Sequence record: NC_019526.1
Reading direction: 5' to 3' (one strand)
Length of the DNA stretch: 64,000 nucleotides
Under the pieces are notes generated by a model, which was not told the DNA's origin, did not search any database, and saw nothing but the letters and a program-made list of their open reading frames with translations. Below are positions 38,043-57,513 of this stretch, piece after piece; the first letter of the stretch is position 1; every line of letters starts with the position of its first letter. The translations under genes were made by a program, and so were the position numbers.

Positions 38043-38600
38043 ATGATCATCCAAATCAATAGTTATAAAACAAAAGAAGAACTGACCACCCTTATCATTA
38101 AAGCTATTCAAAAAGGGGAAAGTTATATCAAAATTCCATTAGATAAAACAAGCAATCGTAATATTGTTATTTCTCAAATTGATAAAGATTTTGATATCAA
38201 TATATGCTATATGGAAGAAACCAGTACTGATATCATTTACTCAGGTACTGAATCATTTAAACCAGACCAAATCATTACAGCAGTGTATAATTGCGTCCAA
38301 CGTTATTTCAGTACTGAACCAAATAAAACAATCAGAGAACAACAAAAATACAATACACGAAATATGCAAGAAGTAGAAAAACATAGTAAAAACTTCCCCT
38401 GTGGTATGACCGTCAAAGAATTAAAAGAATTAATTAAAGATTGGCCTGAAACCAATCAGTACGGAGAAGATACTTTAGTCTATATCAGTACTGAATCAGA
38501 TACGGATTGTACTGTACATTCTTCGTGGTGTTCATCAGTAAGAACTAATGATAATGGTACACTTGTATATGACTTAACTCTTGATACAGAACAAAGATAA
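38043..38600 (+). CDS. hypothetical protein
   Basis: AAGGA SD. Confidence 0.75.
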   Translation: MIIQINSYKTKEELTTLIIKAIQKGESYIKIPLDKTSNRNIVISQIDKDFDINICYMEETSTDIIYSGTESFKPDQIITAVYNCVQRYFSTEPNKTIREQQKYNTRNMQEVEKHSKNFPCGMTVKELKELIKDWPETNQYGEDTLVYISTESDTDCTVHSSWCSSVRTNDNGTLVYDLTLDTEQR

Positions 38601-38608
38601 TTAAAAAG

Positions 38609-38648
38609 ACTCCCCGTAAAACTCGATCAAACGGATTCTACGGGGAGT
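38609..38648. terminator. GC-rich hairpin bounding the gene run
   Basis: ACTCCCCGTA/TACGGGGAGT stem; A tract on left. Confidence 0.5.
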
Positions 38649-39074
38649 ATACTATATTGGACGATATGGTCATTATAGTAGACAATTTAATGGATATGGG
38701 TGATTCAGTACTGATAATAATGAATAGGAATTGATAAGAATAGTATAGTACTATTCAGTACTATTCAGAGTGAATCAGTACTATTAAGAATGATTAAGTA
38801 CTGATATGCCACTAAGTCCGTTTATAAAGTCGCACCCAGTGGGCTACATTTGTAACTATTCAGTACTTAATAATTCAACTCATCAATTATTACAAACCTA
38901 ACTATTTCAAATCTAATTACCCCATTAACTAAATCCCCAAATTATATATTAGCAAAAATCCCAGTACTAAATCAAGAAAAATCTGGATTGTCGATGAGAA
39001 AAAATCTGGATTTTAAAAATTTTGAAATGTCGTTCATAGTTCAGGAAAAAAATGAAATCATAACAAGAAAAGTG

Positions 39075-39103
39075 TTGACACGGACATACTGCCATTATAT
39101 AAT
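39075..39103 (+). promoter_or_regulatory. perfect consensus sigma70 promoter
   Basis: TTGACA-17-TATAAT. Confidence 0.85.
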
Positions 39104-39109
39104 GTAATC

Positions 39110-39590
39110 CTCAAGACGAGAGAATGTTCTCTCACAGAAAATGCGAAGAAGCCGAGTTTATCTGTCCCTGCGTTAGTGGGCTAACATTTGAATAGGACAA
39201 TACGTAGATGAGTGAAAAAGGTTCAAAGGGAAATATTTGATTCCCTGTAGTATAGTTAATGAGTTAGTACTGATTTAGATATAATCATTGAGTAGTACTA
39301 CTGTCGCAAAGGGAAACCTTTGGCTTCCATGGGGAGTGATGACAGAAGGGCATTATCCTCCATATAGAGTTACTGCGAATAACTCCGTAAGTTGGGTTGT
39401 GGCAAACCTCCTAAAATAGTGAATCTACAGTACTACTGATTGGTAGTACTGCTTTTAATTTAAAGTGTTTCTTTCCATAGAGAAAAGGTGCATGTAACTT
39501 GAACATGTGAACTACGGGAACAGTACTGAACAATTCCAGTACTGATTCCTCTCCAAATTTTGGATACAATAATGCTAGGCTTCAGTTAGT
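39110..39590 (+). ncRNA. candidate long structured ncRNA
   Basis: No ORF; many hairpins (CAAAGG-gaaa-CCTTTG, GAGTTA/TAACTC, CAGTACTAC/GTAGTACTG). Confidence 0.5.
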
Positions 39591-39596
39591 ACTGAG

Positions 39597-39715
39597 TGAG
39601 AATGATAATGATTCTCATTTGAATTGGATGAGAACGATTCTCATTTACTATTGCAAATGATAATAGATTGCATTTACGAATGGTTCTCATTCGCAGATGA
39701 TAATGATTCTTATTC
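39597..39715. promoter_or_regulatory. cluster of Fur-box-like sites
   Basis: GAGAATGATAATGATTCTC (16/19 to GATAATGATAATCATTATC) at 39598; 7-1-7 sites at 39629 and 39698; two weaker sites between. Confidence 0.75.
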
Positions 39716-39847
39716 AAAATTGATTTTTCCGATTTTTTCCATTAGTCACCCTTCAGCGTAGGGTTAATTTTTCCCCTGCCGAATCGGTTTTATATTTTCA
39801 AAATCTGGATTAATCATATCAGTACTAACCCAGATAAACAATACCCT

Positions 39848-39862
39848 TTTACAAATCTTTAC
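39848..39862. promoter_or_regulatory. CpxR-consensus direct repeat
   Basis: TTTAC-AAATC-TTTAC (GTAAA-N5-GTAAA on - strand); identical at 40220, 40833, 41067, 48856. Confidence 0.5.
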
Positions 39863-39889
39863 AAAAAGATTCTAAATGCGAATACAAAT

Positions 39890-39908
39890 GATAATGATTC
39901 TCATTTAC
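39890..39908. promoter_or_regulatory. Fur-box-like site
   Basis: GATAATGATTCTCATTTAC, 15/19. Confidence 0.7.
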
Positions 39909-40115
39909 AGTACTGAATACTTTTCCCCACGCCCTGGCGTCTCCGGTTCCTCCCGTCTATATAAACATTATACAGTACTGAAATATTAAGTCAATACTAT
40001 TTTTTCAAAAAGATTAAAATAAAATACTTGCAATCCTGATATTATTATATTATAATGTTTACAGTACTGAGAAAGTGCTTTTGCCAGCTAGGGTGCGGGG
40101 GAGTATGCGTTAAAT

Positions 40116-40134
40116 GAGAATGATAATCATTTAC
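40116..40134. promoter_or_regulatory. Fur-box-like site between convergent promoters
   Basis: GAGAATGATAATCATTTAC, 16/19. Confidence 0.75.
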
Positions 40135-40328
40135 AGTACTGGACGGATTTTCCCACCCTCGGGGGTCTCTTTTTGTCTATGTAGTAATTATACAGTACTG
40201 AGATACTATATCAAGTCTCTTTACAAATCTTTACAAATCACCCGGGGAGATTTTTCTTTACAATAAAAGTACTTGCATAATTCTTTCAGTACTGCTATTA
40301 TATATTCATACCAAACAGGAGAACTACC

Positions 40329-40499
40329 ATGAAATACGCATACTCTTATTTTATTGTGAACGGTGAACGTTTGACCATCGGCCAGGCAGCGGTAAAGCAT
40401 GAAATCATTTGCGATGATCTGGCGAAGATGCTACCAGGTGAAACGCAAGAGTTTTACAAAGGCTTTCAGAAAGTCACTGTGACCCGCTGCGAAGATTGA
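40329..40499 (+). CDS. hypothetical protein (56 aa)
   Basis: Own promoter, AGGAG SD. Confidence 0.7.
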   Translation: MKYAYSYFIVNGERLTIGQAAVKHEIICDDLAKMLPGETQEFYKGFQKVTVTRCED

Positions 40500-40562
40500 T
40501 CCAGTACTGGGGCAGCAATGCCCCTAAAACGTCCTGTAACGCATTGTAAGAGGTTTTAGAAT

Positions 40563-40790
40563 ATGGCTAGAGAAGTTAACGCAGGTGATATAAAGGCGGC
40601 TGTACTGCGTACACTGAAAGCATACGGCAGAAAGTTGAATGATCGCAACGTTCCCTATTATTTCCTTGCTGCTACTCATAAAATGGCAATCGCTGAGGCT
40701 CGCGGGTGGCTGAATGATCGCAGTACTGTAAAGAGTACCAGAACAAGAAACGCAATTGAGCGATGGATAAAAGAATTAAATCATTTCTAA
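40563..40790 (+). CDS. hypothetical basic protein
   Basis: GAGG SD. Confidence 0.65.
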   Translation: MAREVNAGDIKAAVLRTLKAYGRKLNDRNVPYYFLAATHKMAIAEARGWLNDRSTVKSTRTRNAIERWIKELNHF

Positions 40791-40949
40791 TAGTTCAGTA
40801 CTGAAATTATAAGGGGAGTTAATTAATTCCCCTTTACAAATCTTTACAAAAGAATTGTTGACATAGTATCCCAGTACTGGTATTATGTATTCATAGACAG
40901 AACAAGTCTTTGGCCCACCGGGTGCGGGGGAGTATCTATTAGATTGAAT

Positions 40950-40974
40950 GAGAATGATAATGATTCTCATTTAC
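40950..40974. promoter_or_regulatory. overlapping Fur-box-like sites between convergent promoters
   Basis: GAGAATGATAATGATTCTCATTTAC (16/19 and 15/19 registers). Confidence 0.75.
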
Positions 40975-41178
40975 TGTACTGAATATATTTCCGCACCCTT
41001 TTGGGCTTTTCGATTACTTTCTACTTGTTAATAAGTATACCATAATCAGTACTGAATGCAATGGTCTTTACAAATCTTTACAAAAGAAAATAATTATAAA
41101 AAGTACTGAAAAAGTACTTGACGTAATAATGTAGTACTGGCATAATACATCCATACCAAACAGAACGGAGTAACTATA

Positions 41179-41466
41179 ATGTTTAATGAAAATGATCATA
41201 TTGTTAAAGAGTTTTCTTTCAGTAAGCCTATCCATTTAGAAAACGGTGAAACGCTGGACAATAAATTTTATGGTAGTATTATTAAGCGTTATACATCGCG
41301 GAGTAGTACTGGAATTTTGTGGGAAGTGAATAAACAGTACAATGGTAATTCGCTGGTTGTCAATGAGTGGGAAAGTTATGCAGTAGCTGAAATGGATTTT
41401 TCTAACTTTATTACTGAATCTTTGAACGATGATATTTTTTACAAGTTCACGGCGGAAAGGGTTTAA
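41179..41466 (+). CDS. hypothetical protein
   Basis: Own promoter, GGAG SD. Confidence 0.75.
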   Translation: MFNENDHIVKEFSFSKPIHLENGETLDNKFYGSIIKRYTSRSSTGILWEVNKQYNGNSLVVNEWESYAVAEMDFSNFITESLNDDIFYKFTAERV

Positions 41467-41582
41467 AAAGTTTTAAAGAGTACTTGACAACATAAACCAG
41501 TACTGTATAATGTATTGCATAGAAAGGAGATTCCAGAATAATGGAATCTCCGATAAAACAAACTAATCAGGAGTTAATTACC

Positions 41583-42191
41583 ATGAACGTTATCGATACC
41601 ATCTATTCTAAATCTTTTATCGAACTGAATGAAGAGCAGAAAGAAAAAGCAATTGATATTATGCGGGAAATTGAAAATCAGGACACTACCCCTTATTGGT
41701 CAATTGATCTTGTTAACCAGATGAAAGAAAAATTAGTACAATATGGAATTGATGATTCTGAAATTTTGTGGTCTGGATTTTGTTCACAGGGAGACGGTGC
41801 AAGTATCAGCACTGAATCAATTAATGCTGAGATGTTTTTACGTAAGGTAAAAGCGTGGTCTAAATTTAAAGGCTTGCGTAAATTCATCTCCGAAGAAACT
41901 ATTTCTTTGAGTGTTCGCCGGGTGAGCCATCATTACTATCATGAATATTGTGTTAGTGGTAATGTTGAAATTGCTTATTGTGAAGATGTTACCGCCAAAC
42001 AAGAACAATTAGTGGACGATTTGCAAACTTTGATCACAAGTACTATTCGTGATTTGTCTCGTGAATTGTATAAAGATTTAGGGAATGAAAACGATTATCA
42101 AAATAGTGATGAAGCATTGATTGAATTGATTAATGCAAATGATTATAATTTCAAAGTTAATAGTACTGGTAACGTATTGGGGTTAGCGTAA
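41583..42191 (+). CDS. conserved acidic protein of the SGFxSQGDGA family
   Basis: F-x-EL...KEKAI, WSGFCSQGDGAS, HYYHEY, LYKDL..E.DY..SDEA; function unproven; track ATG 41541 lies in a 5' hairpin. Confidence 0.7.
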   Translation: MNVIDTIYSKSFIELNEEQKEKAIDIMREIENQDTTPYWSIDLVNQMKEKLVQYGIDDSEILWSGFCSQGDGASISTESINAEMFLRKVKAWSKFKGLRKFISEETISLSVRRVSHHYYHEYCVSGNVEIAYCEDVTAKQEQLVDDLQTLITSTIRDLSRELYKDLGNENDYQNSDEALIELINANDYNFKVNSTGNVLGLA

Positions 42192-42476: not shown

Positions 42477-42791
42477 ATGAGTACTAAAGAACTGAATGTA
42501 ACTACCAACACTTATAAGACGTTATGCGGTCGGTTGTTACGTGATTATTACACTGTAGAGATTGAAGAACGCGAATTACCCGAAGATAAACACTATTGGG
42601 AAAGTGGTGTTAGTCCTCTGCTACGGGTAACAACGTCTAAGCATGTTTTCTTTACTTCCCGCATTCATGTTAATAAGCGTGTTGAATTGACTTTCTCTTT
42701 CAGTGGTAGTTATAAAGATCATGAGATCTTGAATGATCGTATCGTTATTAATAAATTTATTCAAATGTATGGTGCGGATTCTTTACTTTAA
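42477..42791 (+). CDS. hypothetical protein
   Basis: Promoter-hairpin-AGGAG cassette. Confidence 0.75.
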   Translation: MSTKELNVTTNTYKTLCGRLLRDYYTVEIEERELPEDKHYWESGVSPLLRVTTSKHVFFTSRIHVNKRVELTFSFSGSYKDHEILNDRIVINKFIQMYGADSLL

Positions 42792-43657: not shown

Positions 43658-43690
43658 AACAAAGGGGATCGATTGATCCCCTTTGTTGTT
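43658..43690. terminator. bidirectional intrinsic terminator
   Basis: AACAAAGGGGATC-gatt-GATCCCCTTTGTT. Confidence 0.75.
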
Positions 43691-43849
43691 TCAGTACTGA
43701 ATTAATAATAGATACACTACGGCACCCTATGGGTTAGTGCCTTGTGTCCGGCTTATGTGGTTATTATGCCAGTACTGCGAACATAAGTCAATAGTTGATT
43801 TGTAAAGAAGTGTAAATGCACAGGAAGCATTGTAAGGCGTTAATCTGTT

Positions 43850-47418: not shown

Positions 47419-47507
47419 TTGACAAATCTTTACAAATCCAGGGGTTGACTTCGGTCGCCCCTTTTGTTATTATATATTCATACCACAGAGCAAGTGGTTT
47501 AGCCCAC

Positions 47508-47625
47508 AGGGTGCCGAGATGTATCTATAGTTTAATGATTTTAAGTACTGAAAAATAATTATAAAAAGTACTTGCTAGACGTGAATTCTTTTAAGAATTC
47601 ACTTGTATTTGTGATTCAGTACTGC
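47508..47625 (+). repeat. 118-bp direct repeat, copy 1
   Basis: Identical to 57395-57513 except a 1-nt indel. Confidence 0.9.
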
Positions 47626-48845: not shown

Positions 48846-49235
48846 TCTAATTCCATTTACAAATCTTTACAAAACCAGTACTTGATTTAATTATTGAGTA
48901 CTGGTATTATATATTCATTGGCAGATAAGCCGCAGCCCACAGGGTGCCGAGGTGTATCTATAGTTTATTGAATTGAAGTACAGAAAAATATTTCTTGCAT
49001 AATTCATTTCTTATGTTATAATAGTAATCACATAAATTAATTGGAGTGAACAAAAATGTTATTAGATTGGCTCAATACTTTATCCCCTGCTGCTGGCCGA
49101 CGCTGGGCTATCGGTTCGTCGGTTGCCATCGTTGTAGGCGTCATTGTACTTTTAGTGATGATTTTCTAAAAAGTACTTGCTTTAATGATCCAGTACTGTA
49201 TAATGTACTTATACCAAATAACAGGAGTAAAACCG

Positions 49236-50726: not shown

Positions 50727-50757
50727 AAAAGGGGAGACAATGAGTCTCCCTTTTTTG
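50727..50757. terminator. bidirectional intrinsic terminator
   Basis: GGGAGAC-aatga-GTCTCCC flanked by A and T runs. Confidence 0.75.
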
Positions 50758-50949
50758 TATTCAGTACTAAATTATATAGATACATTTATGCACCCTGTGG
50801 GTTAGTAGCTTGTTCTGCTTTATGTAGTAATTATATGATAAAGCTGGTGGCTTGTCAACACTTATTTTAAAATAAAAAGTACTGAATAGTACTTGCAAAA
50901 AGTATTCAGTACTGTATAATGTTTGTATTGAGATTAAGGAGTTCTTACT

Positions 50950-52800: not shown

Positions 52801-52987
52801 TTTAAAAAAGGGGTTGACTTACGCCAGCCCTTTTGTTATCATTAGTACATAGCAAGAACAATGCTCAAGCCCACAGGGTGCGGAGGTGTATCTATAGTTT
52901 ATGTTGGTCTGAATCATTAATTTTCTTGACAATTGGTTTAGTACTGGATATAATAGCCGCCATTGAATACAGGAGGATTTTAAAAAA

Positions 52988-55431: not shown

Positions 55432-55614
55432 AAATAAACATAATAAACAAAAAAGGGGGTTGACACAGGTCAGCCCTTTTGCTATTATTAATATCAAGAA
55501 AACAAGCTAACCCACAGGGTGCATAAATGTATCTATAATTTATTAAAGAATTTTAGTACTTGACAACGTAGTACAGCAGTACTAAAATATCTACATACAA
55601 AGGAGATTACCAAA

Positions 55615-57315: not shown

Positions 57316-57394
57316 TCTTTACAAATATGGGGGTTGACTAATGTCAGCCCTTTTGGTATTATATATTCAATCCAGCGAAATGGTCTAACCCTCA

Positions 57395-57513
57395 AGGGTG
57401 CCGAGATGTATCTATAGTTTAATGATTTTGAAGTACTGAAAAATAATTATAAAAAGTACTTGCTAGACGTGAATTCTTTTAAGAATTCACTTGTATTTGT
57501 GATTCAGTACTGC
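57395..57513 (+). repeat. 118-bp direct repeat, copy 2
   Basis: Matches 47508-47625. Confidence 0.9.

Follow-up and report, generated by a model that had tools for sequence, protein, structure and literature searches.

Face-to-face copies of an early promoter cassette, with candidate Fur boxes between them, near the inferred left genome end of Klebsiella phage RaK2

The 64,000-nucleotide (nt) stretch of sequence record NC_019526.1 analyzed here, referred to throughout as the window, contains a 1.4-kb zone in which six promoter cassettes point at sequences resembling operators of the iron-sensing bacterial regulator Fur. The 2.5 kb around this zone is 100% identical to positions 225000 to 227500 in the record of Klebsiella phage vB_KleM_RaK2 (345,809 bp; hereafter RaK2), and a window position is the RaK2 record position minus 186000. 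Comparison with related phages identifies the six cassettes as copies of a repeated early regulatory module of the RaK2-like jumbo phages, and two such modules set face to face as a unit that is old and conserved in this phage group. At the center of the unit, phages of Klebsiella, Salmonella, and Erwinia have a Fur-like box, which we read as a later addition to an older device.

Results

Two convergent cassette pairs and their Fur-like boxes

The promoters, boxes, and leader motifs of the zone are as follows (promoters are scored out of 12, a perfect TTGACA-17-TATAAT scoring 12/12).

40028-40056, plus strand: unit A rightward promoter, TTGCAA-17-TATAAT (10/12)
40214-40187, minus strand: unit A leftward promoter, TTGATA-16-TATAAT, with CAGTACTG in the spacer (11/12)
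40858-40886, plus strand: unit B rightward promoter, TTGACA-17-TATTAT (11/12)
41061-41034, minus strand: unit B leftward promoter, TTGCAT-16-TATACT, weak or degenerate (8/12, under the scan threshold)
39994-39967, minus strand: cassette C leftward promoter, TTGACT-16-TATAAT, with CAGTACTG in the spacer (11/12)
39841-39813, minus strand: cassette D leftward promoter, TTGTTT-17-TATGAT, weak, aimed at the cluster (8/12, under the scan threshold)
39597-39717: cluster of four or five Fur-like boxes (19-mer windows 39598, 39604, 39630, and 39699)
39884-39908: Fur-like box C, two overlapping 19-mers with 3 and 5 mismatches
40116-40134: Fur-like box A, at the dyad of unit A, from the consensus scan
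40950-40974: Fur-like box B, two overlapping 19-mers with 3 mismatches each
39925-39934, minus strand: cassette C leader motif GGGCGTGGGG
40091-40103, plus strand: left arm of palindrome A, leader motif GGGTGCGGGGGAG
40141-40158, minus strand: right arm of palindrome A, reading GGACGGATTTTCCCACCC on the plus strand, which is the leader motif of the leftward cassette
40920-40932, plus strand: left arm of palindrome B, GGGTGCGGGGGAG
40991-40998, minus strand: right arm of palindrome B, CCGCACCC

An earlier note on this DNA had described six cassettes that all point into a Fur box, and reading of the sequence confirmed each of them in position and orientation, two of the six promoters being weak. 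The note had also presented the pairs converging on the boxes at 40116 and 40950 as mirror images, and so they are: the arms 40193-40214 and 40858-40879 are 91% complementary, and the box-plus-arm module forms a 58-nt repeat with three copies in RaK2. The GGGTG motif, placed by the note about 20 to 35 nt from the box, starts 24 to 34 nt ahead of each box (the motif is GGGCG in unit C). The inferred starts of face-to-face modules are about 115 to 135 bp apart, and the box centers lie at about +62 and +55 from them in unit A, +69 and +65 in unit B, and +64 in unit C; the sixth cassette, D, has its closest cluster box at about +98 from the inferred start.

As the Fur operator consensus we used the 19-mer GATAATGATAATCATTATC, an array of GATAAT-like hexamers. 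With 3 mismatches or fewer it has five matches in the 64 kb (39598, 39890, 40116, 40950, and 40956), all of them in 39598-40974, where 0.13 would be expected in the whole window and none of 100 shuffles reached five; with 5 mismatches or fewer, 9 of the 25 matching windows fall in the 1.4-kb zone. The fepD-entS, fur, fepB-entC, and fepA-fes regions of Escherichia coli (E. coli) are controlled by Fur, and their best matches in the same scan were as follows.

fepD-entS: 3 mismatches
fur promoter: 3 mismatches
fepB-entC: 4 mismatches
fepA-fes: 6 mismatches

Box A and the entC operator have a 13-nt core, AATGATAATCATT, in common, and with 3 mismatches the candidate phage boxes equal or better the real E. 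coli operators in consensus match. In classical Fur repression the box overlaps the -35 and -10 hexamers and blocks initiation; the candidate boxes fit operators by sequence and do not occupy this usual position over the promoter. The best match in phage Munch (2 mismatches, in a scan of its first 3.6 kb; segment L024:2343-2361) falls within a coding sequence and encodes D-N-E-N-D-Y; it probably arose by chance and is a reminder that consensus matches alone prove nothing.

Enterobacterial hosts encode Fur. When E. coli Fur was compared by tblastn with 50,697 phage records, 34 of them matched; none of the 30 Fur-homologue matches listed is a RaK2-like phage, so any Fur acting here would be the host's, and a genus tally of all 34 matching records held no host of RaK2-like phages except one 1.9-kb Salmonella fragment.

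The convergent unit in related phages

Sensitive BLAST with unit A matched 54 phage records, and wherever a record begins at the physical end of the genome the unit lies 1.0 to 1.36 kb inside it. Positions of unit A in the records, from BLAST, are given below; the genome ends of fEgEco12 have been confirmed with restriction digests (PMC13070987).

vB_Ec-M-J: 1233
fEgEco12: 1232
Munch: 1008
fENko-Kae01: 1007
XbC2: 1014
Muenster: 1075

Units also occur far from the end, at 7.4 kb in Munch, at 3.5 kb in vB_Ec-M-J, and at 2.1 kb in the case of RaK2 unit B. In all, 14 face-to-face cassette pairs were found in nine phages, and by GGGTG-to-GGGTG spacing they include the following.

56 nt: vB_Ec-M-J (two pairs), XbC2, and an XbC2-like contig; best Fur match at the dyad 9 to 10 mismatches (no box)
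67, 74, or 78 nt: RaK2, Muenster, KP13-7, Munch, and Hallingskeid (two pairs each); Fur match at the dyad 2 to 5 mismatches

All 10 pairs with a spacing of 67, 74, or 78 nt have a Fur-like box at the dyad; they come from Klebsiella, Salmonella, and Erwinia phages, and the 67-nt class has its 19-mer centered there. RaK2, KP13-7, and the Erwinia phage Hallingskeid agree in every base of the 23-nt block that holds box A, with diverged flanks, and in Muenster two substitutions swap GAGAAT and GATAAT in such a way that the Fur match is kept. Because the arrangement of cassettes converging on a box recurs ten times in five phages, it is maintained rather than accidental, and because the pair exists without a box in E. 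coli and Xanthomonas relatives, the box is a lineage-specific insert in an older device and does not form its core. Fur-consensus sequences also follow single leftward modules and form the cluster nearer the genome end, which has counterparts in Munch, KP13-7, and Hallingskeid. The unit A rightward leader is conserved in E. coli phages (BLAST query positions 40-87), and at the position of the weak promoter at 39841 relatives hold better ones (TTGACA-17-GATAAT in vB_Ec-M-J and Munch).

About ten repeats of AGAYGGCTA type occur in the E. coli phage vB_Ec-M-J (segment L004:720-925) and in the Xanthomonas phage XbC2 (segment L007:610-775). Read in reverse complement, the ATCCGTCTA-type box downstream of GGGTG in many cassettes is similar to this motif, a likeness that hints at a phage DNA-binding protein. 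In Hallingskeid (segment L003:3620-3881) a Fur-like box (3 mismatches) lies past a promoter and overlaps the start region of a small open reading frame (ORF), the product of which has weak N-terminal similarity to RaK2 ORF324 (9/17 identical, E = 9e-5), so the ORF324 gene family may be linked to Fur in both phages.

A cassette family with a structured leader

The cassette has a sigma-70 promoter in which CAGTACTG immediately precedes the -10 hexamer and ahead of which there is often a TTTACAAA / TTTACAAATCTTTACAAA repeat; the promoter is followed by a typical initial transcribed sequence, a small hairpin, CCC-loop-GGGTGC, a purine-rich stretch, and a short downstream box of TGTATCTATAG or ATCCGTCC type. 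The pattern CCC plus 2 to 6 nt plus GGGTG, 25 to 30 nt past a promoter, is found on the plus strand at 40091, 40920, 47509, 48942, 52876, 55517, and 57396 and on the minus strand at 50795, 43727, 40998, and 40158, with variants at 39934, 39751, and 38837. The cassettes outside the zone (43791 and 50858 on the minus strand and five plus-strand copies) face no Fur box. The earlier note had related the GGGTG core to the boxes by way of an RNA polymerase paused 10 nt past GG, which overstates the case: the motif belongs to a transcribed leader used across the early region, and most of its copies have no box nearby. About 50 nt past the plus-strand copies outside the zone there is a second promoter, and then the ORF. 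The two leftward copies outside the zone are as follows.

43718-43791, minus strand: family cassette, no Fur box ahead, about 95 nt to the two-way terminator 43661-43687
50786-50858, minus strand: family cassette with a 12/12 promoter, ending at the terminator 50730-50757

Since these run for about 95 nt to the two-way terminator of the upstream gene, short noncoding RNAs are expected from them.

Plain promoter-likeness in this AT-rich window is near chance overall (17 found versus 14.4 expected), and the reality of the cassettes rests instead on their extended shared architecture and its conservation across phages. Of the promoters with AGTACT in the spacer that reach at least 10/12, 30 are plus-strand and 7 are minus-strand. 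The leftward promoters have their spacer motif in common with promoters that drive genes, and the initial transcribed sequence of the unit A leftward promoter, ACTACATAGAC, has a near-identical counterpart before a real gene of the same phage.

We collected 47 leader copies from RaK2, KP13-7, vB_Ec-M-J, Munch, Hallingskeid, XbC2, an XbC2-like contig, XaC1, and Kaldavass, and a covariance model built from ten in-register copies gave 46 matches in 147 kb from 10 sources. The first hairpin takes many different stem sequences at one and the same place (for example, TGAG/CTCA, GTCA/TGAC, GGAA/TTCC, GCCG/CGGC, and AGAC/GTCT), and the loops are purine rich and 6 to 7 nt long. All four pairs show changes on both sides, and 89% of the cells are paired; cells with a double change number 63, compared with 24.9 ± 3.0 in shuffles (0/500), and the covariation score is 0.369, compared with 0.077, with at most 0.065 in slid controls. 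The alignment was fitted to the model, which favors pairing; the slid controls keep the relatedness of the sequences yet stay low, and they argue that the signal is real; we read the leader as a selected structure. The second hairpin, CCC/GGG, is invariant and hence uninformative either way. That the predicted cassettes of this family are real transcription units is best supported by the hairpin covariation combined with the promoter architecture they share. MAFFT with RNAalifold on the 47 leaders recovered the invariant CCC/GGG hairpin alone, and a single-sequence hairpin search against shuffles yielded 0 of 47 leaders at p <= 0.05; the first hairpin thus emerged solely from the covariance model and the pair counts.

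Within the zone the leader model gave a good match for the unit B rightward cassette alone (40890-40929, 31.9 bits); the unit B leftward cassette (40989-41028) reached 15.2 bits (E = 0.22), and the other four gave no match. Unit B as a whole folds at -46.7 kcal/mol (z = -5.25), a whole-unit hairpin being expected anyway from two inverted copies of a cassette, and the arm changes in XbC2-like contigs can equally be ascribed to concerted evolution. The unit was also considered as an intrinsic two-way terminator and rejected as such: there is a weak plus-strand match in unit A alone (5 pairs, 40150-40165), and the U-run of this terminator-like hairpin is absent from the Hallingskeid and Munch units. 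The conserved hairpins in the promoter-proximal transcript, the first covarying and the second invariant, recall antitermination leaders of the lambda nut or HK022 put kind, and we take this as a lead only.

Several sequence elements accompany the family. In the cassettes at about 47.45, 52.83, 55.47, and 57.35 kb the -35 hexamer lies inside a GGGG...CCCC hairpin followed by a T-run, that is, a stem-loop terminator, which the zone cassettes mostly do not have; in these overlaps (47440-47475, 52810-52845, 55450-55490, and 57330-57365) the TTGAC of the -35 hexamer is in the hairpin and the T-run passes directly into the -10 hexamer. The window has 102 copies of the palindrome CAGTACTG, against 0.64 expected (for example, at 38706, 39908, 40134, 40872, and 41498). 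In most early promoters the palindrome immediately precedes the -10 hexamer, and often AGTAC recurs joined to the -35 hexamer; further copies are found within ORFs and, densely arrayed, at 38700-38810 next to the inferred genome end. It resembles a site that some factor would bind or recognize. The TTTACAAATCTTTACAAA direct repeat, with a 10-bp period, lies behind cassettes between back-to-back promoters and is also present in vB_Ec-M-J (segment L023:3450-3467); it could be a sequence similar to an UP element or a protein site. Ten nucleotides past GGGTG, most cassettes outside the zone read NTG TAT CTA TAG (or TAA), at the following plus-strand positions.

47519-47530, plus strand: NTG TAT CTA TAG/TAA element
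48952-48963, plus strand: NTG TAT CTA TAG/TAA element
52886-52897, plus strand: NTG TAT CTA TAG/TAA element
55527-55538, plus strand: NTG TAT CTA TAG/TAA element
57406-57417, plus strand: NTG TAT CTA TAG/TAA element

This element could be a three-codon mini-ORF behind a GGGTG resembling a Shine-Dalgarno (SD) sequence or a DNA box (variants ATCCGTCC and TTACGCCCAAAA); alternatively, the consensus pause sequence having Y-1/G+1, it could supply the Y-1/G+1 of such a pause 10 nt past GGG. A weak copy of CCC-loop-GGGTGC (14.9 bits, E = 0.27) lies at 38828-38854 on the minus strand and, in Muenster (segment L002:14-40), within 40 nt of the left end set by PhageTerm; it was not seen in the other relatives with defined ends. 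A 19-nt pattern, GTCTATGTAGTWATTATRC, was tried as a marker of relatives in viral contigs and dropped, as it is a generic promoter plus initial transcribed sequence and is present in unrelated contigs.

Genome position and gene context

The phages K64-1, Muenster, RCIP0023, and KP13-7 are close relatives that match the same 2.5 kb at 94 to 97%. Muenster has a direct terminal repeat of 20,030 bp (1-20030, set by PhageTerm), the first base of which aligns at window position 38815; by synteny with Muenster this would be the left end of RaK2, and the Fur zone would lie 0.8 to 2.2 kb inside it, where the early region begins, the repeat being the part of the genome with the early genes. In PA5oct, a related phage, the host polymerase transcribes the terminal repeat early, and the repeat has abundant noncoding RNAs (PMC7318152). 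We found no transcriptome of any RaK2-like phage in the literature, only the more distant PA5oct having one. Further features of the zone and its surroundings are as follows.

38815: inferred left boundary of the direct terminal repeat of about 20 kb and physical left genome end, from the alignment of Muenster base 1
39748-39775, plus strand: terminator-like hairpin and T-run for rightward transcripts; on the opposite strand it is part of the leader of the 39841 cassette
40219-40240: TTTACAAATCTTTACAAA repeat between divergent promoters, with copies at 39847-39868, 40832-40853, and 41066-41087 (repeat families D4 and D9)
40273-40301, plus strand: ORF324 promoter of ordinary type, TTGCAT-17-TATTAT (repeat family D3), divergent with respect to the leftward promoter in unit A
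41118-41146, plus strand: ordinary promoter of ORF326

The two ordinary promoters are without GGGTG and are aimed at ORFs, not at boxes. The zone occupies a 1.5-kb gap without credible genes, in the stretch between the end of ORF322 at 38600 and the start of ORF324 at 40329. ORF323 (40114-40266), annotated in RaK2 and in Muenster (CPT_Muenster_001), was rejected as a gene and is very likely spurious, because its start is inside Fur box A, it crosses the leftward promoter and the TTTACAAA repeat, and in KP13-7 the frame closes after 10 codons. There are no tRNA or tmRNA genes in the 64-kb window, and no known RNA family of Rfam was found at gathering scores in the 64 kb or at E <= 1 in 38600-41600. 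Pfam gave DUF7300 for 42477-42788 alone among the six downstream ORFs, so the candidate regulated genes offer no clue to function.

To the left of the zone, a perfect sigma-70 promoter (TTGACA-17-TATAAT, 12/12) lies at 39075-39103 on the plus strand and is followed by no ORF of 60 amino acids (aa) or more; vB_Ec-M-J, Munch, and XbC2 have promoters at the equivalent position. The predicted product is a noncoding RNA of about 650 nt that would run through AGTACT-rich DNA and the Fur-like cluster to the hairpin at 39748-39775, the minus-strand fold of which has a z of -3.8.

Discussion

We tentatively favor, at a level somewhat short of probable, the view that a convergent cassette pair of the promoter-early stem-loop (PeSL) kind is ancestral and that some lineages added an operator for host Fur at +55 to +69, which would probably gate elongation or interference according to iron status. 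At the level of sequence, the pair is seen as the ancestral device, the output of which would be set by collisions and by pairing of the complementary leaders, and some lineages are seen to have placed a candidate host Fur operator at its center. From there we infer that iron-loaded host Fur on the boxes would stop or slow polymerases arriving from both sides; because the boxes lie downstream of both starts, bound Fur would act on the elongating polymerase and not on initiation. Read-through to ORF324 and ORF326 and the amount of leftward RNA would become iron dependent, polymerase collision and sense/antisense pairing would also be altered, and the first transcription events of infection would follow the iron status of the host. 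The direction of the iron effect is not deducible from the sequence. The earlier note had proposed a collision device in which Fur occupancy decides the outcome; the geometry, the consensus match, and the recurrence in five phages speak for that proposal, and the boxless pairs of relatives speak against it.

A number of observations weigh against an added Fur gate. Two of the six zone promoters are weak (8/12 each), and the six cassettes are not independent events, since the three box-plus-arm copies duplicate a single module. No box overlaps the -35 or -10 hexamers, the usual placement in Fur repression, and to our knowledge Fur is not an established roadblock. On the leftward side of unit A in RaK2 the leader hairpin has been lost, and whereas whole-unit folds are strong in unit B and the relatives (z of -4.2 to -5.8), that of RaK2 unit A is like those of shuffles (z = -0.34). 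The same convergent unit is without a Fur box in relatives that infect E. coli although that host has the same Fur, and vB_Ec-M-J and XbC2 have AGAYGGCTA iterons in place of the Fur-like cluster; because the E. coli relatives are boxless and have AGAYGGCTA in place, the boxes could be one of several interchangeable operators for phage proteins.

That last thought leads to an explanation we consider distinctly improbable, in which a DNA-binding protein encoded by the phage uses the boxes as operators or iterons, for example in the shut-off or timing of early transcription, and the likeness to Fur sites is incidental. One protein would then bind both the end-proximal cluster and the unit dyads, and each genome does have one motif type in both places: vB_Ec-M-J and XbC2 hold AGAYGGCTA at the cluster and another leftward-cassette motif at the dyad, so the motif at these positions can be swapped between lineages, and the E. 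coli phages are boxless despite E. coli Fur. However, the boxes match the Fur consensus at 16 to 17 of 19 positions, with an F-F-x-R hexamer layout and the exact 13-nt entC core, they are seen in Klebsiella, Salmonella, and Erwinia phages and, in weaker form, in the Xanthomonas phage XaC1, and no candidate phage protein was identified. Klebsiella, Salmonella, Erwinia, and Xanthomonas hosts share that Fur consensus. Hardly a stronger case can be made for a Fur sponge, in which replicating genomes would titrate host Fur and derepress iron uptake and other Fur-repressed genes, promoter position being secondary. That multicopy boxes titrate Fur is well established in the laboratory and is exploited in the Fur titration assay, and a sponge would be served by the at least nine Fur-like windows in 1.4 kb, which include a tandem cluster not between close promoters, and by two copies of the box region per packaged genome, since the boxes are in the terminal repeat. 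It leaves unexplained, however, the box at the dyad of a conserved pair, the spacing classes of 67, 74, and 78 nt, and the placement in the DNA transcribed first, and relatives manage without boxes.

Two further explanations we regard as very unlikely. T4 oriF and oriG consist of a promoter and a downstream unwinding element, and in T7 polymerase pausing is needed at the concatemer junction; by analogy the palindromic units might be DNA-level elements for replication or end processing, either a transcription-primed two-way origin or a packaging signal of the terminal repeat. Throughout the family the unit keeps a fixed distance from the physical end, iteron-like clusters adjoin the units, and the units are long imperfect palindromes, but synteny of the whole left end suffices to fix the distance, similar units lie well off the end (Munch, 7.4 kb; vB_Ec-M-J, 3.5 kb; RaK2 unit B, 2.1 kb), and the promoters are of the early sigma-70 type. 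For these last two reasons, the R-loop primer and bidirectional origin raised in the earlier note found no support; the -35 hexamers of TTGACA type are early and not middle mode (MotA dependent) as at oriF and oriG, so these are not R-loop origin promoters of the T4 type. Equally hard to sustain is the notion of a recombination by-product of mobile promoter-terminator cassettes, with box pointing due to duplication of a composite module and orientation without function. It draws on the presence of the family in both orientations across the early region, on the three copies of the 58-nt box-plus-arm module, on the decay of the leftward sides of units A and B, and on the known recombination and shuffling of PeSL cassettes (PMC2839356). 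Against it, the pair is at the same place (1.0 to 1.36 kb from the end) in several genera where flanks can no longer be aligned, the spacing falls into discrete classes, and the leftward copies keep the pairing of their leader hairpin through compensatory changes and end neatly at two-way terminators.

Set beside known systems, the RaK2 cassettes are PeSL-like in architecture. PeSL cassettes of T4-type phages (PMC2839356, PMC4122927) are likewise short and repeated and combine a strong early promoter of the sigma-70 type with an AT-rich part upstream of it and a terminator in the form of a G/C stem-loop, and both kinds flank many small ORFs of unknown function in the variable early region of a T4-related myovirus. 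The RaK2 cassettes differ in the added leader with its covarying hairpin and CCC-loop-GGGTGC, in the CAGTACTG spacer motif, in their presence on both strands, and in their conserved face-to-face pairs without an ORF between them. Face-to-face architecture of this sort is present and conserved at the sequence level in RaK2, one partner in unit B being weak. Promoters that face each other over a short overlap form the switches of coliphage 186 (pR/pL), P2 (Pe/Pc), and plasmid pCF10 (prgQ/prgX), where collisions and antisense pairing set the output. Those systems choose between lysogeny and lysis or control conjugation and have dedicated repressors at the promoters, whereas RaK2 is a lytic phage with the pair several times per genome and a candidate control site at the midpoint. 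The boxes resemble fepB-entC, fepD-entS, and fur in the 19-bp consensus at 3 to 4 mismatches, in overlapping hexamer arrays, and in the identical entC core; they differ from classical Fur promoters, where the box overlaps the -35 and -10 hexamers, in lying 55 to 69 nt downstream of both starts. The closest working precedent we found is reported for the lytic Bacillus phages phi29 and Nf, in which binding sites for host Spo0A affect phage transcription and replication (PMC2731898); there too, by that account, a lytic phage carries sites for a global regulator of the host and is modulated by host physiology, with another regulator and another host, and with the candidate sites of RaK2 differing in lying downstream of two converging promoters. 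A full-text literature search for "jumbo phage" with "Fur box" found no paper.

The conserved structured leader, the face-to-face cassette unit, and the left-end control map of the RaK2-like phages stand independently of Fur, and literature searches found no description of them. The more specific proposal, that in RaK2-like phages infecting Klebsiella, Salmonella, or Erwinia host Fur is an iron-sensing gate at the collision point of two strong early promoters, within the DNA transcribed first, and there sets the balance of read-through, antisense transcription, and collision, and with it the pace or outcome of infection, we regard as unlikely. If it were true, an elongation block at the dyad would be an undescribed mode of Fur action and an undescribed form of phage decision making. 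If Fur binds, the units would provide a natural test bed for protein roadblocks between converging promoters, and RaK2 would clearly exemplify a giant phage, strictly lytic, that has coupled a nutrient sensor of its host to its first transcription; because iron limitation is normal for Klebsiella and Salmonella in the animal host, the performance of such phages, including in therapy, could depend on iron.

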